Shown here in pieces: positions 517-45,903 of a stretch of 64,000 bases of DNA; position 1 is the stretch's first letter; each line of letters begins with the position of its first letter. The notes below the pieces were generated by a model, which was not told where the DNA came from, searched no databases, and saw only the letters and a program-made list of their open reading frames with translations. The translations under genes were made by a program, and so were the position numbers. The stretch lies in the NCBI GenBank assembly GCA_964035545.1, contig OZ037765.1, positions 8,566,698 to 8,630,697 of the forward strand. The letters are read 5' to 3'. The stretch comes from Bugula neritina. Taxonomy: Eukaryota; Animalia; Bryozoa.

Positions 517-1619
517 TTATATGGACCCTCTTGGGTCTCTCCGAGACACTGCTTTGATGATTGCAGCGTTTGTGGGTTCATCATTTATAAGTTCATCGTA
601 AGCAGATGTGATCGATTTGTGTTTTTCCTCATGGGACAGAAGGCGAAGCAACAGAGCATGTCTTATTTTTGTTCTTCTCTCTGTTAGGTTTTCTAGTTCT
701 AGCTGCTCACAAGCTGCTGTCACACTATCCCTCCCTTTGAGGGTTGATATAAATCTTATGATTCCGTGTTGCACCATCTCAATGCCATTTATTAGATAAT
801 TTAATGTGGTATCCCAAACAGAAGCTGCATATTTAATATGCGGTTTACATAGGCTTGTGTAAGCAAGGAGACAAGCGGAAGCAGGGGTATCATGCAGTGC
901 GCGTTTAATCATGCTCAACTGTTTTTTGGTTTTTCCAATTTTACTCTGAATGTGTTTGTTAAACTTCAAGTCCGAATAAAGAATGACGCCCAGGTAGCAA
1001 GTCTCCTGCACAATTTCTAGGTTTGTCTTGTTTAGCACATAGCTGGTATCAGAGAAGTTTATTGAACTGCCCTGAACATTTATCAGCATTGAAGGACATG
1101 CAGCACATATTTGCCCATTGTAAAGTGCTTACACATTGTTTTGAAATCTCAATTTATCTTGAGCATTGTTGACCACCTGATAAATGAAGGTGTCATCGAC
1201 AAATAGACTCATGTTGCAATCAACGGATCCGGCAAATCATTAATGTAGGCTAGGAAGAGGGTAGGGCCTAGCACTGACCCCTGACGAACCCCAAAAGTTA
1301 CAGGCAGCTCATATGAAAGTTGCCTTTTAATCCTCACTTTTTGTTTGCGGTCCATAAGGAAGTCATGAATCCATTTCACTATCTGTGTACTCACATTAGG
1401 AATGTTAAATAGTTTTTGCATTAGGGGTTTGTGTGAAACTTTGTCAAACGCCTTTCCAAAGACATGAACTACTGCATGAATATTATCACCTTTGTCTAAA
1501 TGCCTAGCAATGTCGTGATATGTGCCACATAATTGTGTCTCACATGACAGCCCCTTACGAAATCCATGCTGTCTGTTACACGAGATATTCTGCTTATTTA
1601 CGCCTTGTAATAAATGCAA
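517..1619 (-). mobile_element. Degenerate non-LTR retrotransposon (LINE, CR1/L2/RTE-like) reverse transcriptase fragment
   Basis: ORFs 1209-1619 and 517-1089 carry RT motifs QHGFRKGLSCETQL, KAFDKVSH, GVRQGSVLGPTLFLAYINDLP and YLGVIL..DLKFNKHI. The frame is broken near the expected ADD motif (VDDTF in another frame), and the element is 5'-truncated. Confidence 0.92.
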
Positions 1620-13554: not shown

Positions 13555-16043
13555 TCATTGGTTCAGCTCTCGTAGAGCTGCGTTTAACTTGAGTATATCC
13601 ACCATAGTCATTCCAAGGTCTTGTCTCACCATTGGATAGAAAGCATCTGGAGACCTGACCTGAATGGTCACCATCTCTGCCAGCAGTTTACCATTTACTT
13701 CACCAAGTCTAAGGAGAACGAAATTGAACATCATATTTAACAGGCGAGTAGCTGTTGAGATGTAAATACATTAAAGACATAATCTGAAGATGTGAGAAGT
13801 ATAAATGTGCTTAATACTTGTGCCTCTTTTAATCACAGTGCACATCTATATATTGTAAAATAATTTCATCCACTAGGGTTCGAACCGCAGACTTCCAGCT
13901 TGCAAGATAGCCTGCCAACTATTATACCACAGGGGCTAATGGGAAATCTCTAAACTACGTACCGTATATCAACATATATACCTAAATTTGGTAGTAATAT
14001 ATATTATATGCATTATACATACTTTTTAGCATATTTGTCCAAACCCATATTTTTTAACCAGGCATTAACTTGCTGGACTGACCAGCTTGCACATTTTAGG
14101 TGACTAGCATTCAACTGTGAGCCGTCGCTAAAGTCTGGCTTAGACATAGACATCGGTGCAGACCCTTGCAGAGGAAGTTCAGATGAGGGAACAATGTCTC
14201 TAGCTGGATCTTCAGCTGTAGTTTAAATTTTATGCAACGTTAGTAAATAAATTAATAAATGATACATACTAAGCACTGCACACATGTGCTGTGTGATACA
14301 GAAATGCAGCTTTAGCATGCAAAATGCAATTATATAATATTCATGGACTTAAATCATAATATTCAATACATTACATTATATTATAATACATCATATTTAT
14401 AAACAGCAAAAATTCATGGGCTTAAATCATAATATTCAGTACGTTACATTACATTACATCTTTTTGTAGATGAATATGCTAAATGATAGACGCAAGTTCT
14501 ATATAAGCATTGTGAAATAATTTTAAGCAAGCAAGTTCAAAGCTTACGTTCTCCAGGTAAAATTTTCGCTTCACTGCCAAGGGTAGTGATCAGTTCGGAT
14601 ATTTTTTGCTCATACTCTTGGCGCTTGGTGAGGTCATAAAAGAAGATTCCAGCAAGCATAAAACCAAGCCACCCCTCAGGTCTGTACTTAGGTTGTAGTC
14701 TCACTGGAACGATTGTAATTCCTCGTGTGTTGGCATAGGAAATTTCTAAAAATAGCAAAACTTCCTAATAATTTTAAAAAAAAAGTTTATGTGGTAGTGA
14801 ATGTAAGTGGATGCTCCTTGCTGAAATAAAGAAGTAGGCAGCTTAGTGTTCCTTTTCAAATGAATCTCCACATTTTACATAAAACGGAGTTAGAAAAAAA
14901 TTGGGGAGTTTAGGTCTAGTAAATTATGGCCAGTACCATTAAAATATATATTACATGAAAAGATACAGATTAATGGGAAGTCAAAAGCACTTGAGAAGCA
15001 TATTATTGATTATAAAATCTCGTTGCCTATTACCTTGCCTACAGGGGTTGCTGGCTGGATACTTTTCTGTCAGCACTGGTATGATGTGAGAAGAGTTCTC
15101 TACAGCCTTAGCCATGGCTACATTAGTGTCGCTATTCTTGTCTAAAAGTTTATCATTATGATGTGTTTATACTGATACAGAGATAGGTAAATGTGTATCA
15201 CGCATGCTGCATATATATAATCACTTCTTAACTTTATTCCAAGTCTTATTCTATTATGCTTAAAAGCAAATTTCAACAAATAGCTTATAGAATTCATTTC
15301 AGTCTTCGGATATAAATTCTTTTTCTGCAAATTGTTAAAAATGTTGCTGCATTTTCAAGTATAGGCTGTATACCATACACAGCTGTACATGTATGACCTG
15401 ATTTATTTTAATAAAGTGTCAAGAAAAGCATGTTTATGACTCACGCATTTGCTCCACATCAATCCAAACTCTCAGCCCAGCCTCTTTTAGTTTCTTTCTG
15501 AGCTGGAGCACTTCTTTCTGGACATCCCATTGATAACTTATCATTATGTGTTTAATTTTTTCTAAAACAGATTACCTCATAAACAACGTGTTCTTTATAA
15601 TTAAATTTAAACAGTTATCTACATGTAAATAGAAATAATCACAAACTCATTTGCTTTAAGTGAAAACAACCAAACAACGTTGCCATCATGCAGGTAGAAT
15701 TAAATGAGATGTTATAAATTATGATGATACAGTTGATTATATTTGTTTTCTTAGGTACTATAGCACTTATTTCAGTTGAGTTCTTGTTTTTAATTGTAGT
15801 GTTAAATAACACTTGCTTTTGCAACTATTTCCCATAACTTGGATTTTGCAAAAGATAGCAACTTTTGCCCATTTCTATGCTTACTGCTGGCTGCTTGCGT
15901 CTCTCCGCCAGTTTTCTTAGATTCTTGCAAGTATTTAGATTCTCCTTCAATTTTCCAAAGAGCACCAGTAGCAGCTCCTTTCACTTCAGCATCAGCTGAC
16001 TTGGAAAGCTTTTTCAAAGCTGAAACACACAAGCACCCACTAT

Positions 16044-16117
<74 letters not shown>

Positions 16118-19100
16118 GTATCTATATTTATTAACTCAATACAGAAACTTAAAAAGTAGGTACTATTCAAGAATACAAATACATTAGATCAACAATTTTT
16201 GAGCCAATGCTATAATTATGTAATTTGTTTCTTCATATAGTCTAATGCCTAAGCATATTCTTATAACTACACTGTGCATATTGATTGTGAACATTTTGAA
16301 AGACAGACATGCTTTATTAAAAGATTTGTGAATTCAAAAATATATACATTCATTTAGCTTTTACACCAACGTCTCTTTCTTTTGTTACATAAAATTCAAG
16401 TTTAAAACTAATAGCTGTTCCGTTGCTGATTTATTGAAGGCCCCATAGAATAAGGTGTGAGCAGATCACACATAGGCTTCAGCAGCATTAGCAGTTCACT
16501 GTAATTTTGGTTGACTTTGTCATTATTCTAACTCACATTTAGGCCCACAATATGATTTAAATTTTTCCGTTTATTACTTTTTTTTAAATGAAATGATAAA
16601 ATGCAATCAATCTATTGGATAGTGGTAGCTTATCAACTATTGGAATCCAAATATCACACGCTGCATATTTATTTACTTTCATCCTTACATTACACAGAAA
16701 TGCATAAGAATTAGAATATGATATAAATTATAAACAAATCACATGCAGAGCTCTATGTTGAAAATCGCTCAATATGCAGCTAATAACGCATATTGAATAT
16801 TGCTTAAGCTTGTAACTCAATTCATATATAACTTACTCTCTAGCAGATGTGGCTCGCTGCTAATTTTTTGTTTGCTGTTTTCATCAAAAGCTAAGGTCCA
16901 CACACCATGAGCTGCACATTCTTGGAGAGGGGGGTTGTCTTTCCTCATCCCATCAAGATAGTAAGGCAGAATACCAGCGTCTACGAGTCGCTGCTTGTTG
17001 CTATCTATCACTGCGATGTTATTAAGGCCTACAATCAGCTCTTCAGCATTGTATCCATACAGCTTAGAGCGTTCATTTGGTTGACTCAAAGCATCCTTCA
17101 GGACTGTAATAAGAAACTTGATATCGTCTTCTCCTAACTCTAACACTGATTTCTCTTTGTCGTTGTTTTCCGACAGTAAGTAAGAGTACGCCAACATAGC
17201 CTTAGCTTTCAGTGTAGCTGTTCCACTATTTCTGTATTTTCCGATTATTCTCAGGGCATCTTTTTCTCGAAGGTCACTTATCGAATTATCATGTTTGTTG
17301 CAGAAGTTATGTAAAATACCCAGAATTGCTTTCACAACTTTGTGTTGAGGATGGGTGGCTGCTACCTCAATGGGAAACAAGTGGCTATCTAATGCTTCTA
17401 AAAGAAACGGTATTGTGTTTTCATACAACGGTAGTAATGTTTCTGGAAGTTTCATGTCACTTCCGTTCCAAACAATAACAAGCACGTGGTAGCAGTTTGT
17501 AAGTGCATCGACGATGCAAGAGTTGTTCTTAGCAAGCTCCTGCCACTGTTGTCCATTGTCGCTACATCCACCAGGTTCCTTCTTGGATTTCTCAAAAGCA
17601 CTCATCACTTCTTTCCAATATTTTTTCAAAAGCTTAAAAATTTGGTCTTTGTTGATAAGTTCTTCTAAAACCAGTCTCCTATTTTTATGCTCCTTATTTT
17701 GTGATGGGTACAGGCCTTTGCTTAGCAAACTGCAAAATAGTCATGCTGACTCATTAAAATATGAGAGCTGGTATAACAGTAGACCGCTACAAGATCATGC
17801 AGCAACCTGCAATACTCAGTATACCTCTATATATACATCATACTGTATAAAAAGCAGTTGGTAATTTTTATCAACACACTTGAAATCAGCCAGCAAATAA
17901 TTTGACACCCGAACACTATCACCATCTCATAGTTAAAAATATATCTATTATGCAAATGTATAGTACTTAAGCTATGCACATGATTTGATAGAGAAAACTG
18001 CTGCCAACACCAGATATTTTAATTATAATAAAGGATGCAAGTATATGTATGTATGCAAATAATTTACGACAAACTTGTGACTCTAGAATTTTGGTTTAAT
18101 AAGAAAGAATTTTTAAAATGCACTTGGTAAAACATGACTTACAAGAAATCTTTTTCATAGTTGCTTGCATTTGTTACGAGCTCATCTACTGGCTTAGATA
18201 GCAACAGAGTTAGGGTGTATTTTAGCTCTTTTAGTCTTTGTTTTACGTTGCTATCTGTCACCTTCCATTTAGAAATATAATCATGAGGAATTTGTGCTTT
18301 GGACCCATCAGAAAGACAGGCTGGAGGTGGCATCTCTGGTTCTGTTGGTGGTTTAGGAACAAGTTTTCCATCAGCACCTTCTCCATCAACTGCATCCTTG
18401 TCAGCTGAGTCTGATTGGTTCCTGCCAATTGATGCTTTACCAGCATAACTTGGAGGGCCAGATTTTTTTGTTGTCAAATTTGTTTGTTGGCTCATTTCTG
18501 GTAACTTTTCCATCACACTCTAATAATATTCACATAATCAATAAACATAGTTGGTGCATTATATACGTTATAAGTTGCATTATCTACTGTCAGTGCATGA
18601 GTGATTTGAAGTTGTTAGTAAAATATAATCAATATAGTTAGAGGGCTGTGCAATATCAATATACTTTAGACCTGTGCAAAAATACTTCATACTCTACTAT
18701 TTTTTGGAGATTCTTTAACATTTACCCTCCCCCACCGTGTTGCTAGTATGATATTGATTATTATCATATATATAGGTATATGTAATATGTAATTGATGTG
18801 ATTGACAGTAAGTACTCATTATTGATGCTTTGTGATACTAGCTAGCTTAAACTCTTTTTAGTATGTAAAATACTTTTGTACAAGTGGTTTCTATAAAATA
18901 TAATATATTTATTTGAAATTTTTTTCTACAATTTCTAGTTTAAATACCAACTTTTGCTTCTATAAAAACATGCACTGTAGCTTTTGTGCTTTTTATTGAG
19001 TTTTTATATTTAGTTGTTGCAATGTCCTATTGACCAGAATATTGTTTATAACTTCTATGAAATGTTTTACTAGTGTACTTCAAAAGGCACTCTTGTCCTA

Positions 19101-19392
19101 TACCTAGTTCCCATTCTCAGATCAAAACATACTAGTAATAAATGAGTAGCCATGCAATGATGAAAAAGTTATTTGCACAAAAACATGCCACTAATAACCT
19201 GATCAGCAATGTCTTACAATTGCAAGATGCTGAATAAAAAGACACTAAATTATCTTTTCAACACTAAACCCAAAAGCTTAAAATAAAATTTTAAAAAATA
19301 TATACAATTTGGATTAAACATATTTTTATAATGTAAATTAGTAGCTGATATGAAACTACACACTTTCGTAAACTTACTGATGAACTTCCCAT
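13555..19392 (-). CDS. ARM-repeat + TIR + SAM-like domain protein, paralogue A (predicted N-myristoylated)
   Basis: Exons at approximately 19378-19392, 18143-18519, 16837-17729, 15885-16019, 15446-15561, 15034-15141, 14548-14745, 14023-14216 and 13555-13708; the junctions checked are in phase. ARM: GLNNIAVIDSNKQRLVDAGILP..AAHGVWTLAF, GAATGALWKI. TIR: HIMISYQWDVQKEVLQLRKKLKEAGLRVWIDVEQM..AMAKAVENS..SNPCRQEISYA..IVPVRLQPKYRPEGWLGF. SAM-like: WSVQQVNAWLKNMGLDKY..VNGKLLAEM. Confidence 0.88.
13866..13936 (-). mobile_element. tRNA-like (Ala-TGC loop) SINE head or tRNA pseudogene in an intron
   Basis: The minus strand reads GCCCCTGTGGTATAATAGTTGG...CTTGCAA...GCGGTTCGAACCC: A box, TGC anticodon-like loop and B box, with poor stem pairing. 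Confidence 0.55.
14340..14455. repeat. Short local duplication (~40 bp, two copies)
   Basis: ATTCATGG(A/G)CTTAAATCATAATATTCA(A/G)TAC(A/G)TTACATTA occurs at ~14340 and ~14412. Confidence 0.8.
16047..16112. repeat. (TA)n microsatellite
   Basis: Directly visible; it explains the IYIYIY run in ORF 15802-16170. Confidence 0.98.
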
Positions 19393-20057
19393 TGCTCAAA
19401 AGCTCAAATCGAGATTGTCCAAACTGATGATTGTAGTGTTACTAAGACTTTAGTTTCTAGCAACAGATTTTACTAATTTCTTTCACTAATATAGGATTAT
19501 TTTCTATTGAAATCTTTACACAGTAAAATCAAGTTAATCTAAACAGTTGTGGATGTAAGTTCTAAACCTTCTTACATATAAACAAATAATATAAACTAAT
19601 GGGCACGCAGCTACACACTACTTACTATTTAATAAAAGTAAAACCCTCTGTTTGTATTGCATATAGATCTATATCAAATCAAAATTGAACTAGCTTAGCA
19701 AGAGGTTACAATATGAATATTGAATTACTGAACTAAGAAGAAAATGCTTACTACTTACTAAGCTCTCAATAATAGACTCTGTTGCTAGCCAAGCTAAACA
19801 AACATTAGGCTAGAACAAAAGGTGTGCTAAGTTTGTTCACCAAGGAGATTGTGTCAAACATTATGAGTTCGTTTACTCAATGCAATATAAAAAGCTGCAT
19901 GTTATTATACTGAGTGCATCAGTTGCTTAGCAACAGCTTCCTGTTTACAAGAGAGGATAACTCTTTTATATTATACAGCTTTCTAATTTGCTGATAACCT
20001 GATACAAAACCTGTAGGCCCTACAGTAAAATAATTTCTAATAATTATGATTTAATTT

Positions 20058-20215
20058 TATATATATCACACACACACACACGCACACACACGCACACGCT
20101 CACGCACGTGCACGCACACACACATACATAATATAATTATGTGTATATATGTATATATGTGTATATGTATGCATATAATATGTGCATATATCTATATATA
20201 TGTATACATATGTGT
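20058..20215. repeat. (CA)n / (TA)-(TG) mixed microsatellite between the two TIR genes
   Basis: Directly visible. Confidence 0.9.
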
Positions 20216-21236
20216 ACAATGCTATTACATAATAATACTATTACACAATGTTTATAATAAAAACACATAATAGTTGATTATTAAACCAACATGGTATGCT
20301 TAAATGTTATGCAAATAGATGACAGCAGAAGGTATTCACAAAATGGCCCACAGTGCATTTTTGTCAAAGACTGCATTTAGTTAGGTCTTTAAAACAAGTT
20401 TACAAGTAAGAAAATATTTTATTTCCCAATATATGCATGTGATTTGTTCTAAGTTAGAGACAGTGTCATCAAATATTTTATAGGAATACAGGTTGCAGAA
20501 CATTCTACAGAATTATGTCTAGAACTTAATTAACGGTTTTATTTTGTAGTTGTACCTGATTGTTACAGTAAAATAACATTGACTTTCTACTATTTAGTTG
20601 TTAGCCAAAGCAACAGTATATGCAACGACCATAATGGTAGCCACGATAGTAAGTGGTAGAAAGTAGAATAATGACAGTGCTTATTGTGGTTCTTAATTCT
20701 TTACATGCTTACACCTACACTGCATACACTCTTATAGCTCATTAGCTAATAAAGAATAAATTGGTTATTAATTGGTCAACCCACCACTGCTCTTGAATCA
20801 GATAAAATTTATGGCAAGCTTGTAACTGCTTAAACTATTTCTTGGAAAATTATCAGAAATTTAGATAATGGTTAAAAATAGCGATTTGACCCCTCAGTTG
20901 CAATATTAATCAAAATATAGATAAATTATTCTAATAGCTAATATTGTTGGGGTAACACATAATTTTATATGCTATATGTATGTTACAGTTTATTCACTAT
21001 AAACTTACTTTATTATATCTACTTTTATGTTTTTTTATTACTTTACTCCTTTAATTTTCTTTTAAATTCAACATGCAAATACACCAATGTTTGTATTTAC
21101 TTTCCAAACAATGATAATGTTAAAACATTAATAAAATAGAACATAGTAAAAATTACAAAATATGGTGGCCAACGAGGCATATATTATATTAGTCATGAAG
21201 AGTGCACAAAACATTTTGAAAACAAAATAAAACACA

Positions 21237-24200
21237 TTACATGCAAATAAGTTTTCTAATGGCAAGGTTTAGTCTGAGTAAATGTAACAAAGGCATGTGA
21301 TATTCACTCTTCATTAGGTCATAATACACATCCGGGGACATAACTCTCATTGCTGCTAATTCTGCTAATAATGCACCATCAAAACCTGAAAACCTACAAT
21401 TACAGTAAGATATTTATACATATTTAACAAGCCTTATAGTTGTAATACACAATCATTTTATTATAGCTGCCAATGCCAAAATGCGTACATTTTATGTTTT
21501 AAAATTTATCTGCTGCATAATTATGGCTGATTTCAAACATTCATTAGCATAATAAAAACAGATGTGGTTATCTACTTCTACAATTTGTTTGCCAAACAAT
21601 GAAATTTTGTTTTACTCAATTAATTAAGTAAAAATTGCACAGGTAAAAATGGCACAGGTAATAATGGCACAAATGAAAAAATAGGTAAACATGGCACACT
21701 GATGTTAAATTCCCAAACCCAGACCCCAACCCAAGCCTCAAACCCAAACCTCTCACCCCAAACCCCAATATTGAAAATGTACCATCTTTACCTAATTTTA
21801 CAGTTGTGCTATTATTACCTGTGCCATTTTTATTGTCCCATTATCACCTGTGCCATTTTTACTGTCCCATTTTTACCTGTGCCATTTTACTCACTTATCA
21901 ATGTATTCACTGAGTTGATATTCCGTCAGCCATTGACCAACTCTTTCACTAGTCCAACCCTGACAATTAAGGCTGGCTATATTAAACTCTGCTTTGGACC
22001 CGGTGATTAGTGAGTCGGATCTCTGCAGCAGCGCAGAATATGGCTGTAGTTGCGCAGGCGCCACAGGCAGCGCTGCCGTATTAGCTGCTGACTGAACTAC
22101 CTCTTCTTCTTCCATCTCTATCACTGGGTTTTCATCTATAATTATTTTAGTGTAAAAGGAATGCATTAGGATAATTTTCAAAACATACTTCAAAGAAAAT
22201 ATTGTCACTGCATAAATTTTCAACAGTTCGAGTTTTTTGCTTAAAATTATACTCTTTAAAAACACTGTATATTACTGTGATACCACAATGTCACAAAGTG
22301 TTAGATATAATTAAGCTTATATGAAGCAAAAATTGGTAAAGGGAAAAGTCAGACCTATTATAAAGTTTAAATTAATAATTTGCTTTGTGTTTGGTGTTGG
22401 TGCAAAATCTCAGGTTATTTTATTTCAAAAGAAGAAAAAACAATGTCAAAACTTAATTTAAGGAAAAGCAAAAGTTGTCCATTTGTTTTCGAAAACTTAT
22501 TAATTTATTAATGAAAATCAGAAACAAGACTACCCGAAATATTTTACTACTCTTTGAAACATACCTTCCCCAGGCCTGATCTTCCCATCTTCACCAGCAG
22601 CTTGAAGGAAGCTTTGGAATTTATTTTCGTAATCAGCTTTCTTGGAGAGATCATAGAAATATGTGGAGCCCAAGAGAAAGCCCAGCCAGCCATCAGGGCG
22701 GTATTTGGGCTGAAGGCGAATTGGTATAATCTTCTTTTGTAAGTGGTGAGCATACTCTATTTCTGTTCAAGTTGGAAAATAAAATCAACAACATTTCAAT
22801 TAATATATATAGTAACTGCAGATAAGAATGTCTATGTATATACATATGCATGAGCATACCATCTGTAGGAAGTTTCTAGGCTTTGTATGAGCAAATATAG
22901 TAAACTATACTATGGTAAGTTCTGTATTCATGTATAAGCCATAAGATATTGGCTATAGCTGCTCGGCATGTAACAAATTTGCAATGAGTAATATTACATA
23001 ACTTATGGGCTTACCTTGTCTACCTGCGGAACTAGCTTTGTATTTCTCTGTTAAAATCGGCACAAACAGTGCTGAACTCTCAACCGCCTTGGCCATGGAT
23101 TGGAGAGTAGAACCAGCTACAACAAAGAATATACGTTAGTTAGTGTGGCAATCAAGCAGGGCCTCATAGTTGCATAGGTATAGCTGTTTATTAGTATGAC
23201 ACAGTTGCATTGTTGATTTACACTGCAATGCTGTAAATGACAAAGTATTACCATTAATAAAGTTGACCAACTTACATATAAAATTAAACAACTTTTATAA
23301 TAAATTTTATTGCTATTATTAGGATGCCTATTACATTTTATTACGCCATTATTATTGCAACTTGATTACAATTTGTATAAACCTTCTTGTAACTGCATCT
23401 CAATATACATGAAATGCATGCACTCTAAAAAATGCTACGTACATATTATGCATAAAACAGATTATAAAATGAATTAACTTATATTGAAATGACACAGATT
23501 GTGCAGAACTTGTCAAAATTTCTTATTTAACACCCATCAGTCATTTCATTCAAGTTTTATTTCTCAGTAAAGTTTTTAATATTATGATTATTTATATGAA
23601 TTGAAAATGTCAACCTTTTGAGAGTATAAAAAACTTTACCTAATATTTAATTAAACACACAACTATGTTAAAATATTATTATGTTCTGCATGTGCAATTA
23701 AATCACAAAGTTAAAAACCTTCTGTATATAATATGATACTATTTGCTGAATATCAGACAGGGTTCAGTTGAAGTCACAGCATCTCAAGTTGAATGAAACC
23801 AATTAATTGAGCAAGTCAAGTTGAGTCAAGCAAAGATTTACGGAAGCTTGAGAATTTTATTTGCTCCTGTCAGCAATATTCAAGTCCAGGTGACTTGAAC
23901 CCAACTCTGCTAACAGCTGTGATCAAGTACTTTCACATTTGATAGATTGAGTTGAAAAGAGAAATTAATAGTTTGAGTTCTCATTTGACAGCCTCAGAGC
24001 TATATTTTTAACAAACTTACACATGTGCTCTACATCAATCCAGACTCTGTATCCAGCTTCTTTTAACCTCTTCCTGATCTTGAGTACTTCAGTTTGCACA
24101 TCCCATTGATAGCTTATCATTATGTGTTGAATTTTCTCTAAAATTTAATTATTATACAGAGCAAGAAATTTCATACCTAAGTTTTGTTATTTACCGTGCA

Positions 24201-26370
24201 CACATATACTAAATATATTTGATGCAAAATTTACGATGATGAAAAATATATAATATGATGCTCGCTTTATTATATAATTTATAAGTAGCACCAAAGTCAT
24301 CACACTATCACATCCTCAAAAATATTATACTTTGTAGTTTACAGTGTTGAACTCTTTTTGAATTAAATTATGTAGGAAATTGTTCCTTTATTCCATGTGT
24401 ATTGCAATCAAACAATTTTTTAATTTAAAAACATTATTAGATAATAATCATGCTATTGCAGAGCTACTGTAAAGCCAAATATTTAGGACATTATTTATAA
24501 TACTTCACGTCTATATCTTATTGGAGACATTGAAAAATATCACAGCGTGTAGCTTACAGATTTTTTATGCAATATAGTATACACATGCAGCTTACTTTCT
24601 CCAGTTTCAGCTGAAGTATCGGTCTTTGAGCTAACTTTCTGAAGGCGCTGGGTTTCTCCCTCCACCTTCCAAATCGCACCACCAGCTGCAGATTTTAGAG
24701 CAGGTATTTGACTGTCAGCTAGTTTATGCAGCTCTACAACAAACAATGCAATGTACTAAAGTTGAGGTCATTCAACTATTATATTGATAAGGTTGAACTT
24801 TATGAATAGAATATCAAAATAAGTTGAAATCAATCTGTAAACTTTTACTTAGTAACAAACCTCCCATACAGCCTGGCTCCTGTTTGATCATATTCTTACT
24901 TTCCTCGTCAAAGGCCAATGCCCAGACACCTTTGGCTGCGGCTTCTTGCAACCCTGGTTTGTTTCTACCCAACGCTTCGACATACAGTGGCAGAACTCCT
25001 GCCTTGACTAGTTTACTTTTGTTAGCATCAACTACTGCAATATTGTTTAATCCAGCAATTAATTCGTCTGCATGATAGCCATATTTTCTAGAATGTTCAT
25101 TGGTATTGTTGAGAGCATCTCGAAGCACTTTTATGACAAATTCTATGTCAGTTTCGTCCAGTTCAATAATAGCAGTTGTACTTGAACCATCCTGTTCAGT
25201 TAACAGATAAGAGCAACTAAGAATACTCTTTGTTTTAAGAGTACTTGTTCCACATCGCCTGTACTGAGCTGCGATTCGCAGTGCTTCTCGTTGTCTCAGA
25301 TCTGGAAGGCATGTGTCATATTTATTGCAAAAGTTGTGTATGATCCCCAGAGCTGCTGTAACGAGCTTGTGCTGAGGATGGTTTGAATCCACTTCCAGAG
25401 GGCTCAAATATTTGTCCAAACTCTGAAGTATAAATTCAATGACTCCTTCGTATAAAACTTTCAACACTTCATCTATTTTCATATCACTTCCATTCCAAAA
25501 GATTATTAGCAAGTTGTACCAATTCATTAGCGAATGTACTAAATGCTTTTGAGTTTCAGTGAATGATTTCCATAACTGTCCAGCAGTAACAAGTTTTTCA
25601 TCGCAGTCTTGTTTTTTTAACTCAAATTCTTGGACAATAGCATTCCAGTAGTCTTTGGCTAGTTCTATTACACCGCCGTCTATTAGGGCCTGGAGAATCA
25701 GCTGTCTGTTTACATACTTGTTGTTGTGGACCTTGAAGGTTCCTTTGCACAGTAAACTACATGATAAAATAAACTGATATTAGGTGGCATAACATGAAAT
25801 ATTAAACTCTTTTTGTATTATATGTTTTTGTAGCTCACAATAATTATATTCTAATGAGAAGAAAGTTTATAAAGTTATTCCAGCTTTGACAGTTTGAAGT
25901 GTTATATTCCCACATAGTTTTTAAATTTGTGTAGTCAGTTTAAACTTCAACCCAAACAAAAGCCTACATTCAATAAACAAAATAAAACCAAGACAAAACT
26001 GCCAAAGTTATTTATAATATAATTTTTAATTGTGGTATTCCTACAAAAAGCCTAAATATTCAACTCAAAAGTTGCATGCAATAAGGTTAATTAATTACAA
26101 AAACCTAAACAACTCCAAAATTTATACTTGTCACCTTAATTTGACAACTTACTAGAAATCTCTTTCATATTTCTGAGGATTGGAAATTAGTTCTGCCATT
26201 CCCTTATTTTTTAATAGGTTTAAAGTGTAGAGTATCTCAGTAATTCTCTGCTCTTTGTTAGCCTCAGTCACTCTCCATTGGTGAATGTAGTCACGGGGTA
26301 TTTGCTCGTTGGACCCGTCTGTTAGACAACTAGGTGGGTCCCACTCTTCTGTTCTTTTAGGAGCCTTCAT
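21237..26370 (-). CDS. ARM-repeat + TIR + SAM-like domain protein, paralogue B (start codon tentative)
   Basis: Exons at approximately 26153-26370, 24861-25756, 24596-24733, 24021-24137, 23015-23116, 22565-22762, 21895-22136 and 21237-21393, with the same intron layout as paralogue A. TIR: HIMISYQWDVQTEVLKIRKRLKEAGYRVWIDVEHMSGSTLQSMAKAVESS..SSAGRQEIEYA..IIPIRLQPKYRPDGWLGFLLG. SAM-like: WTSERVGQWLTEYQLSEY..FDGALLAEL. TAA at 21237-21239. Confidence 0.88.
21627..21891. mobile_element. Non-autonomous foldback element (MITE or Helentron-like) with modular inverted repeats
   Basis: The left end has tandem GGTAAAAATGGCACA-type 15-mers, the right end has the inverse TGTGCCATTTTTACC-type units, and there is a central (AACCC)-like tract. 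Confidence 0.8.
23755..23911. mobile_element. Degenerate MITE-like element
   Basis: Imperfect inverted termini GGGTTCA..AAGTCAC / GTGACTTGAACCC and internal CAAGT repeats. Confidence 0.4.
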
Positions 26371-27396
26371 TCTCTTGAGCTTTGAAATATTATATAGTTC
26401 ATTAGCTATGAAAGTAACCTGCTTTTGGTTTGTTTTACTGTATTTTTAAGATGCTAGTAGTATGTCATACAATATAGACGTAGTATAATTTAACTGGCAG
26501 TAAATAAATTGTGCAATGCAATTTAATATCATTCAACTCCTACTCACTATTACTATTAGTACATCATATTTTATTCTTGTCCATCATTCTGACTCTTTAA
26601 AATAAACTTTGCTAATCATCAATATATATTCAGATAATTGTAATTAATGGAACATATATAATGTTATACAATAATTATAAGTAGAATCAGAATGTTGTAT
26701 ATAAATTAATAAGCAGCTACTTACAGCATTATAACTATTACTTTATTAGATGCAAATACTTACAATATATATGTAGAGAGAAAGCACCTTGCTTTCAACT
26801 TTCTAACCTGTCACCGTGTGTTGACCAGCAACTTGCTTACAACATAAAGTAGTACTTAAGCATTGCATGATATGACTTCCTAGTAATCGACACTAGAGTT
26901 GCTAGTTCTATTGCAATGCAAGAACGTTGTTTACATTTGCTCTGGTTGCTTAGCAACCCTGTGTAAATTATTAGTTGTACTCGCTGTATCTCGATGTAAT
27001 CGACTTGATAATTTTCCACGTAATGTAGCTCTTCCAGTGTGCTCTATGAACTTTAACCTTTTGAGTACTACAAGCATGCATTTAATTAAATAAAACGCTG
27101 TCAACACTGATAGATCATTGTTGAATTTCTTGGAAGCGAAGAGTTGTCATTTTAAAAAGCAGAACCATATTATAATCAACAGTAGAATAAACCAAGTCTA
27201 ACAAAATATTTAAACCACCACAACTTATTTTATAACTTATAACTGTCATTGTGGTTTCACAAGTCAACTGTAATTTGTGTTAAGATTCTTATTTTCTTTA
27301 TTGAAGTTTATTTTACGAAAGAAAAACAGTAACATAACAAAATAAACACAATAATATAACAAAATAAACACAGTAATATAACAACAAACTGAAAAT

Positions 27397-43979: not shown

Positions 43980-45903
43980 TTACGAGGTCTTAGAATCATT
44001 AGCATAGACTGGAGCAATTATAGAAGAAGCCTTTCTTGGAGTTGGTAGGGCTATAGACTCGTGCTGATCATCAAGATTTTCACCGGATAGAAGCCTCTGA
44101 CCGCCGATAACATATTTAAAGAATTCGTAGACCGACCAAGATATAGCAGCAGAAGGCATCTGAAATATCATCCTAGCCTTGGCTCCCCTAAAGAAGCCTT
44201 GGTACCCTTTACACGCAATGACAGTCTTTACAGCCTGCACCATCCCCCGGTCTACCGACTTGCCAGAGTGACAGCACACTTCCTGCGTGTTTAGCAGTGT
44301 CTTACACACATCTAGAGGGTTGGTGATCAGCGCCGCCGTGGAGCCGGCTACAGCACCGGATACTATGTGACTAACCGGCTTATACTCTCGGTCATAGTTT
44401 AACAAATTTTGAGCTTGTTCGTATACACTGAAGTGGACAATTTGAAAGGGTATGTTCATCGCTAGCTGTGTAGAATAGCTGCGGAAAAGAGCTCTTACTC
44501 CTTCTGTTCTGATGATAACTGTGGCACATTCAAGACTGTTTTTGTATGGACTGTTGTACATCTGCATTCTTTGCTTGATCACTGAAATGCAACATGAGAA
44601 GCATCATAGCAAGGAAATACTTCTAGTCAACCACGAGCTACAAGGAATTGGCAAACGGAATAGCGAACAGTTCTTCAGTGTTGAGAAACAGTGTACCTAG
44701 TTAATGATAAAACCTGCTTCCTCATTCCTTATTATGCAAGCGCCTACATACTATAATGCACCACGTAATGTAGCTGCGAGGTGGTAGCACAGGCCTGTCA
44801 TATTACACTACCGTCTACATTCTACAGTATTACCTCAACTGACCCCACAAATAACTTCAATAAGCTTATCGTTTGTGTTAAGTTATCAAACAATAGGCCA
44901 GGCTACAAGCATAGATCCATGACCTATTATTGACAAGTGAACACTGAGTAACTTCTAGCAGTTTCAAGGGTAAAAACCCGAAATGTGGTAACAACTCTAT
45001 GCATAAGACATCAACAGATATAATAATGTATCAGGGAGATTATTCATGCATAATTTCTAATTCACCTAACAGAAATTTATTTCAATCATGATATAGGATC
45101 CCTCAAAGTGCTTAATCATTATGAGCTAGGCAACATTTTCAACTGCATTAAGTATATCAATAACATCAATAATGATGAATGAAGTTGTGAATAATTGCTA
45201 CTACCAGTCATTAGTGTACACAGATTAAACTGACTCAAAGTTAATAATAATAGCACTTACCATCAGCAGGCACCATCAAACCATCATGGAAGAGTGTGGC
45301 ACAGCTACCAGCTGCAACTAAAGAGAGAAATTATGAAGGGTTTATATTCAGCACTATACTGTTGTGACTTTTGATATATATTATATATATAATACTCAGC
45401 AGGGCTACTGTTGAAAATATTTCAAGACCATAAATAGGACTTACTGGTTGCCATGACATTGCTCTGCTTCCTTTCCGATAAGATCCACTTTACCTTTTCG
45501 TAACATGCGAAGTACATGGCATGAGCAGGCCCTGCGCCCGCTATAACTGCAGGCATACCATGCCAAGCACGCCCAAAACCTTCTTTAATTGTAATACTCC
45601 TCATAGCCTGGGTGATACTGTTGTAATTCGCAGAAGTATGGGGATTAAGTGCTTGCATCCTGGTCTGAATAAGTTGATAAGAAAATGTTTTATCAATGAG
45701 AAAAAGTGAAGTAAAAGATAACAATAACTAGTAGTAAAGTGGGATAGTATCATCGAGGATGTACTGACCTTAATACAATCTACTGGATACATGATACAGT
45801 GTTCTGTTATCCCAGCAGTGGCTCCAGCTATCATATGGGTAGATGCAGAAATATTGTCTGGTAACGCCTCATAGTCACCGATATCGAGCCCTCCACTTTC
45901 CAT
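43980..45903 (-). CDS. SLC25A37: Mitoferrin (mitochondrial iron carrier, SLC25A37/SLC25A28 family), 4 exons
   Basis: [76 protein letters not shown] and ISWSVYEFFK are diagnostic. Three carrier repeats are present. Confidence 0.95.

Follow-up and report, generated by a model that had tools for sequence, protein, structure and literature searches.

The window analyzed here, a stretch of 64,000 nucleotides from the bryozoan Bugula neritina, carries two co-oriented genes on its minus strand (13555-26916), which we call A and B. Both encode ARM repeats, a TIR domain, and a C-terminal SAM domain—in this order. A and B are new members of a known and already catalogued protein family, and not a reshuffled SARM1. 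They share with this family a canonical ARM domain, a TIR_2 domain bearing the family signature and the glutamate of the catalytic position, a single SAM domain at the C terminus behind a linker, and an intron located within the codon of that glutamate.

Gene models and transcripts of the tandem pair

The model of gene B was defined from a transcript contig (L001), and that of gene A was derived by homology, using the same intron phases and canonical splice sites. Domains were assigned exon by exon for gene A and via the transcript product, P0155, for gene B. The joined models served for reading frames, intron phases, identities between A and B, and the ratio of nonsynonymous to synonymous substitution rates (dN/dS). 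The window itself is AT-rich. Within it, the following features make up the pair:

13555..19392, minus strand: gene A, 9 coding exons, 729 amino acids (aa), ARM-TIR-SAM, with an open frame and GT-AG at all junctions
19392-19378, 18519-18143, 17729-16837, 16019-15885, 15561-15445, 15141-15034, 14745-14548, 14215-14023, 13708-13555, minus strand: coding exons of gene A
19378..19392, minus strand: first coding exon of gene A, 15 nt, ATG GGA AGT TCA TCA (MGSSS), followed by GTAAGT
16837..17729, minus strand: large ARM-repeat exon of gene A, 297 aa, assigned by ARM profile and phmmer homologues
15561-15445, 15141-15034, 14745-14548, minus strand: TIR exons of gene A, with TIR_2 collinear over the three
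14745..15034, minus strand: phase-1 intron of gene A with its two flanking bases, splitting the Glu549 codon (G at 15034, AA at 14745-14744)
14215-14023, 13708-13555, minus strand: linker and SAM exons of gene A; SAM_2/SAM_1 start on 14215-14023
13557-13555, minus strand: stop codon of gene A
21194..26916, minus strand: gene B, a 5' untranslated region (UTR) exon and 8 coding exons (26370-21237), 688 aa, ARM-TIR-SAM
26916-26764, minus strand: 5' UTR exon of gene B, mapped from L001 and situated just beyond the span covered by the first-pass annotation (13555-26370), which does include the first coding exon of gene A
26370-26153, 25756-24861, 24733-24596, 24137-24021, 23116-23015, 22762-22565, 22135-21895, 21393-21237, minus strand: coding exons of gene B
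24861..25756, minus strand: large ARM-repeat exon of gene B, 49% identical to that of gene A
24137-24021, 23116-23015, 22762-22565, minus strand: TIR exons of gene B, assigned by the TIR_2 match of P0155 and the TIR model
22135-21895, 21393-21237, minus strand: linker and SAM exons of gene B, assigned by the SAM_1 match of P0155 and a helical bundle in the AlphaFold2 (AF2) model

Every splice junction of both genes is canonical (GT-AG), and the seven introns common to A and B have identical phases (2,1,1,1,1,1,2). On the amino-acid level the two proteins are 48% identical overall, with 60% for the TIR domain, 49% for ARM, and 33% for SAM. A first-pass annotation of this DNA had described two intact, co-oriented, diverged paralogues with matching intron layout, which is borne out by models, identities, and phases: A and B are intact tandem duplicates and clearly diverged paralogues. 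Pfam scans of the individual exons place positions 1-35, 35-70, and 71-122 of the TIR_2 profile collinearly on three consecutive exons of either gene; SAM begins on the seventh shared exon, and Arm is matched weakly on the large exon. The ARM, TIR_2, and SAM domains that had been expected from a domain scan are all found, in the order ARM-TIR-SAM.

For gene B, these exons are joined in RNA. The contig L001 (2272 nt), assembled by Logan from a run labelled metagenomic RNA-Seq, maps on gene B as nine blocks with 92-97% nucleotide identity and canonical GT-AG at all junctions; the gene B model is identical to its product P0155 at 679/688 residues (98.7%). Since L001 encodes the whole protein, it connects ARM, TIR, and SAM exons, including the junction within the glutamate codon—the very link between ARM and TIR exons whose absence from transcripts had been named as a refutation. 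Between the window and the coding sequence of L001, gene B shows a dS of 0.20 and a dN of 0.0065, corresponding to a dN/dS of 0.03. For gene A, the metagenomic contig L002 represents the orthologous locus at ~82-98% identity. Exons 2-8—in the numbering shared with gene B—are open in both copies, with a dN/dS of 0.22. Gene B is under strong purifying selection and gene A under moderate purifying selection. The third TIR exon of gene A (14548-14745 vs L002:5442-5639) is the exon that diverges most from L002 (87% nucleotide identity), and several L002 residues therein match paralogue B and not A (e.g., ...TYFYDL). In this exon, sequence may have been exchanged by gene conversion between A and B.

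In gene A, the catalytic-position glutamate, Glu549, lies in the context NPCRQ-E-ISYA with its codon split as G/AA at 15034/14745; in gene B, Glu491 lies in SAGRQ-E-IEYA, split as G/AA at 23015/22762, again by a phase-1 intron. Both splits had been placed by the first-pass annotation at exactly these coordinates. As the intron interrupts the codon, the glutamate is overlooked in raw open reading frames (ORFs) and in fragmentary gene models. The same phase-1 intron splits the glutamate codon in the bryozoan Watersipora subatra (G/AA; L003:7902) and in the amphioxus Branchiostoma lanceolatum (G/AG; L004:3586/3846). Since these two share it, the gene structure is older than the split of protostomes and deuterostomes, and the intron is an ancient bilaterian one.

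The two genes differ at their N termini. The MGSSS exon of gene A joins SVMEKLP..., yielding the N terminus MGSSSS, which fits the N-myristoylation motif MGxxxS/T with its small residue at position 6. This 15-nt exon is conserved in L002, and the Watersipora protein P0001 begins with MGNAAP at the homologous place. An MG start is present in 26/60 family representatives, many of them of the dual-acylation type (MGCxxS), and for members lacking it, a tiny first exon like that of gene A may have been overlooked in the gene model. Gene B starts with MKAPKR, and its transcript bears an in-frame stop upstream of the ATG. These motifs suggest that A is anchored to a membrane and B is soluble. The N-terminal segment of A and B is bryozoan-specific, as it matched only Watersipora.

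Three further elements were seen in the window. Intron 2 of gene A contains a long (TA)n microsatellite (~16040-16120, minus strand) just before the acceptor of exon 3; in ORF lists it appears as YIYIYI.... A reverse-transcriptase fragment (RVT_1, E 8e-15; 1212-1619, minus strand) is located near the window start, and far downstream (43983-44582, minus strand) there is a mitochondrial carrier exon (Mito_carr, E 1e-34).

A catalogued ARM-TIR-SAM family distinct from SARM1

The ARM exon of gene A finds 369 homologous proteins (phmmer, full HMMER pass, E<=0.001). Out of this search, the 157 proteins retrieved up to that point were probed with the domains of P0155 itself: 44/157 show the arrangement ARM-TIR-SAM (40 of these 44 being representatives of 50% clusters), and 19/157 show ARM-TIR. 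The sources looked up comprise Watersipora (bryozoan), Owenia (annelid), Lingula (brachiopod), Lineus (nemertean), Sinanodonta and Plakobranchus (molluscs), Ptychodera (hemichordate), Styela (tunicate), and Branchiostoma (amphioxus). Nearly all members are annotated as 'uncharacterized protein'; automatic naming has given a few of them labels such as 'ADP-ribosyl cyclase/cyclic ADP-ribose hydrolase'. The TIR domain of P0155 is 36-63% identical to those of 34 family members. A and B belong to this conserved bilaterian family of cytosolic ARM-TIR-SAM proteins, which is already catalogued and functionally uncharacterized.

The caveat of the first-pass annotation that the architecture may already be catalogued was correct, as surveys and a 2026 preprint demonstrate. 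In the Aplysia immunome, an ARM-TIR class of 11 genes is kept apart from three SARM genes (PMC9334734), and the combination of TIR and SAM was confirmed by cDNA in amphioxus in 2008 (PMC2575513). The ARM-TIR-SAM family may correspond to one of the ecTIR-DC families defined by Gerdol et al. 2017. According to papers citing that work, these families are widespread in invertebrates, with a hypothesized adaptor or regulator role. Hurieva et al. 2026 (bioRxiv 10.64898/2026.04.20.719644) cluster eukaryotic TIR domains at 40% identity; the Owenia protein A0A8J1TRI6 (P0010) is a member of their cluster A0A0B7AZE4_1. In the rows of their Table S2 available to us, this cluster also contains Lingula, Crassostrea, Strongylocentrotus, Clytia, Branchiostoma, and at least six Bugula neritina entries. 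All entries listed there have GLU at the structurally defined active site, and most have an upstream 'TPR' domain, i.e., one of the ARM clan. For one of the listed Bugula neritina entries, the TIR domain spans 477-604 and the glutamate is residue 549. Because the glutamate of the gene A model has the same index, gene A is probably this UniProt entry.

The likeness of A and B to the ARM-TIR class (A0A0B7AZE4_1, Aplysia, amphioxus) is one of direct homology: the architecture, the TIR signature with its glutamate, and the C-terminal SAM domain are the same, and nothing essential differs. A and B constitute a lineage-specific tandem pair with a bryozoan-specific N terminus and with MGxxxS in A only. 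This genome has five additional, more distant paralogues of the ARM exon (26-36% identity; C2:2127640-2136280, C2:2825512-2833414, C4:3483543-3484040), and contig C2 carries four of them, arranged as two more tandem pairs. In the listed part of Table S2, ARM (TPR clan)-TIR proteins of the green algae Gonium and Chlamydomonas have their TIR domain in the same 40% cluster (Hurieva et al. 2026), and these sequences hint that the family arose earlier or moved from one lineage to another.

A family ARM profile including P0155 finds, among Protein Data Bank (PDB) chains, Vac8 (1e-32), a designed ARM protein, ARMC4/ODAD2, and beta-catenin (4e-20), and SARM1 chains are absent from its best 60 PDB matches. 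The AF2 model displays an all-helical solenoid over residues 20-410 with a predicted local distance difference test (pLDDT) score of ~90. Invariant Asn, Lys, and Trp residues recur across the repeats. Residues of this kind form the lining of the peptide-binding groove in importin-type ARM proteins. By sequence profile, this ARM domain is of the canonical Vac8/beta-catenin/importin type and not of the SARM1 sensor type, and the earlier proposal of an ARM domain gated by a metabolite finds no support here.

In both proteins, a short hinge leads from the ARM domain to the TIR domain. The TIR domain of P0155 is matched by TIR_2 at an E of 4e-21 (residues 423-541). Throughout the family it bears the signature H-x-M-I-S-Y-Q-W ... 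C-R-x-E ... P-D-G-W-L-G. In an alignment of 46 sequences, conservation of at least 90% is reached by E491 of P0155 and by S426, Y427, W450, Y494, P504, G515, and W516; the corresponding column in an alignment of the 34 family TIRs alone (E77) is likewise at least 90% conserved. A profile alignment places this residue on the glutamate of the W-C-x-x-E motif in Cat1 and RPS4, i.e., on the catalytic position of helix alpha-C. In the available portion of the structural table of Hurieva et al. 2026, the C-alpha of this glutamate is offset by 0.5-1.2 Å for family members including Bugula neritina. Both lines of evidence support the assignment of an alpha-C glutamate made from the DNA letters alone. 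By sequence profile, the closest solved relative is the bacterial CRISPR-associated Cat1 (3e-8), followed by prokaryotic SEFIR, RPS4, TIR-1, and SARM1. By structure, the AF2 model of the TIR domain (pLDDT 92) yields Z scores in VIA-align of 17.7 for Hydra TRR-2, 16.3 for the SARM1 TIR (root-mean-square deviation 2.0 Å over 126 residues), 16.2 for IL-1RAcPb, and 16.1 for MyD88. Cat1 has a Z of 13.3, and SPARTA TIRs are reached in Foldseek at a template modeling (TM) score of 0.82. The scores for Hydra TRR-2, SARM1, IL-1RAcPb, and MyD88 are effectively tied, and the TIR domain is not specifically SARM1-like.

For the C terminus, SAM_1 matches P0155 at residues 616-649, and the family SAM profile finds liprin-beta (1e-13), ETV6, SMS1, the SAM domain of SARM1 (3e-6), and that of TIR-1, which confirms the predicted C-terminal SAM domain. 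In the AF2 model, it forms a helical bundle (610-688, pLDDT ~75-95) after a disordered linker of ~45 residues (562-605). The full-length model has a pLDDT of 84 and a predicted TM score of 0.66. Its top match in Foldseek is human SARM1 (E 1.5e-6), yet at a TM score of only 0.21: the domain types are those of SARM1 and the arrangement is not.

Could A and B nevertheless be the bryozoan SARM1 orthologues with shuffled domains, acting as executioners of cell or axon death that sense nicotinamide mononucleotide (NMN) or NAD+? The shared domain types, the top rank of human SARM1 in the full-length search, the SAM profile matching SARM1 and TIR-1, and the automatic UniProt name 'NAD(+) hydrolase SARM1' of some relatives would speak for this. 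Oligomerization for activity would be a further likeness to SARM1, dSarm, and TIR-1 by analogy. However, SARM1 is built as ARM-SAM-SAM-TIR, with two SAM domains forming an octamer hub, as opposed to ARM-TIR-SAM with one SAM domain in A and B. Its ARM domain is a divergent sensor of NMN and NAD+, it carries a mitochondrial targeting sequence instead of the N-acylation motif of gene A, and the TIR domain of human SARM1 aligns to the family profile only over positions 5-65 (E 0.007), with close similarity thus confined to the first half. The SARM1 TIR also belongs to another cluster, T1J6E6_2, in the cluster assignments listed in the preprint of Hurieva et al. 2026 (group 24 of PMC7075850), and Aplysia has SARM genes in addition to members of this family. 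We therefore consider this explanation largely refuted and its remaining probability very small. The formula 'SARM1 parts in a different order', under which the pair was first described, holds for the domain types; it fails for the ARM domain, which is of the Vac8 type, for the TIR domain, and for the number of SAM domains, which is one and not two.

NAD+ cleavage or scaffolding

Activity data exist for relatives. Hurieva et al. 2026 expressed 154 isolated TIR domains in Escherichia coli and recorded isomers of cyclic ADP-ribose (cADPR), NAD+ depletion, and ThsE activation. Among the animal TIRs, 12/61 were active, mostly by glutamate-dependent cADPR production. One of these glutamate-dependent cADPR producers is the oyster protein A0A8W8J0Z4, which belongs to the neighboring cluster K1QUY0_1. 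Catalysis by the ARM-TIR-SAM family is plausible, and NAD+-derived signaling with a cADPR-type product might be somewhat likelier than pure scaffolding—at a probability of roughly one half. It is rated above scaffolding because the glutamate and its C-x-x-E context are kept across phyla and because the neighboring oyster cluster makes cADPR.

The mechanism we propose is as follows. The ARM groove would bind a putative partner or ligand, either a protein or a peptide; contacts between SAM domains would then bring the molecules together in clusters, in which the TIR domains would become active and signal. Paralogue A—like ~40% of the family—would be held at the membrane by N-terminal acylation (MGxxxS), and B would be soluble.

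Several results weigh against this signaling model or lend it no support. First, none of four isolated TIR domains from cluster A0A0B7AZE4_1 was scored active (Hurieva et al. 2026, Table S4 rows 149-152): Chlamydomonas A0A2K3E7X5, Branchiostoma lanceolatum A0A8J9W3M3 (ARM-TIR, 652 aa), Lepisosteus W5N735, and Phallusia A0A6F9DHT8. Second, the presence of the glutamate alone does not predict catalysis, as this position is commonly Glu in TIR domains without known activity. Third, a complex prediction with two copies of the SAM domain gave a score of 0.02, which is neutral on self-association. Fourth, no transcript of gene A was found with P0001 or the ARM exon of A as queries, in a collection that appears to lack records of the window's own genome; the matches were exon ORFs of genomic or metagenomic contigs. 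Finally, L002 lacks 56 nt in exon 1 of its gene A (encoding ...IPHDYISKWKVTDSNVKQ), which leads to a frameshift; the deletion site (L002:1778-2098) is homologous to window positions 18238-18293 on the minus strand and may be allelic, a loss confined to that lineage, or an artifact of assembly. The 'TIR enzyme' of the first-pass annotation stands as far as the catalytic-position glutamate is concerned, and its activity is unproven.

The first two of these results would be expected of a nonenzymatic adaptor, whose TIR domain would connect Toll-like or IL-1R-like receptors (or MyD88) with whatever the ARM groove binds, with SAM as a scaffold and the glutamate being structural or vestigial. In line with such a role, scaffold TIRs (Hydra TRR-2, IL-1RAcPb, MyD88) reach the same Z scores as SARM1, and an adaptor or regulator function is what survey papers propose for ARM-TIR and ecTIR-DC proteins. 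On the other hand, the glutamate and the preceding Cys-x-x are at least 90% conserved across phyla, the nearest solved TIRs by sequence are enzymatic (Cat1, with RPS4 and TIR-1/SARM1 ahead of MyD88 and TLR1), and an oyster TIR of the neighboring cluster is catalytically active. Moreover, Table S4 (Hurieva et al. 2026) leaves RUN1 and RPP1 blank too, two plant TIRs known to be active; because of this, and because only 12/61 animal TIRs were active, false negatives are common in the E. coli assay, and the negative result for the four domains is of limited weight. We regard an adaptor as a possible explanation, at about one chance against two.

The last two results might alternatively mark one or both copies as decaying duplicates without function, with gene A as the candidate. 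The faster evolution of A (dN/dS of 0.22 vs 0.03 for B) would fit such a decay as well. This, however, appears improbable: the frame of gene A is open for 729 codons over nine exons with all splice sites canonical, a dN/dS of 0.22 still signifies constraint, L002 likewise keeps exons 2-8 open, the UniProt entry from Bugula neritina with Glu 549 matches the numbering of gene A, and the deletion in L002 may be allelic or an artifact of assembly.

A bolder form of the signaling model can be formulated, which we consider rather unlikely. In this form, the family would be a second bilaterian-wide TIR signaling enzyme system beside SARM1: N-acylated, with the ARM groove as a peptide sensor, and with a TIR domain that becomes catalytic only upon SAM polymerization of the full-length protein—here split into a membrane-anchored A and a soluble B. 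If SAM polymerization were indeed needed, this would explain the silence of isolated TIR domains in E. coli.

Other TIR enzymes and significance

To our knowledge, SARM1 was long the only animal TIR protein known to cleave NAD+. By now, cADPR production has been reported for several animal TIRs (Hurieva et al. 2026). The oyster protein A0A8W8J0Z4 (639 aa, TIR_2-type domain at 369-497) resembles A and B in its H-V-M-I-S-Y start, its glutamate within R-x-E-A-x-Y, and its G-W-L. It belongs, however, to another 40% cluster and is known here by its TIR domain alone; its activity is not transferable to A and B. In plant TNL and TIR-only proteins, Thoeris, SPARTA, and Cat1, structural similarity is high and the alpha-C C-x-x-E aligns (RPS4, Cat1). 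These plant and bacterial NADases differ in that they combine the TIR domain with NB-ARC/LRR, Argonaute, or CARF modules instead of ARM and SAM, and the sequences give no sign of a recent common origin with A and B.

Since the family and its glutamate are already tabulated and first tests on relatives were negative, the locus leaves the overall picture unchanged. What it adds is a clean gene model—transcript-backed for B—an ancient intron within the codon of the catalytic-position glutamate, and two natural paralogues of which only one has the N-acylation motif. ARM-TIR-SAM proteins are one of the largest nonreceptor TIR groups in invertebrates, and they have no assigned function. For this group, A and B provide a well-defined test case, in which the full-length protein can be compared with the isolated TIR domain and the glutamate mutant with the wild type.

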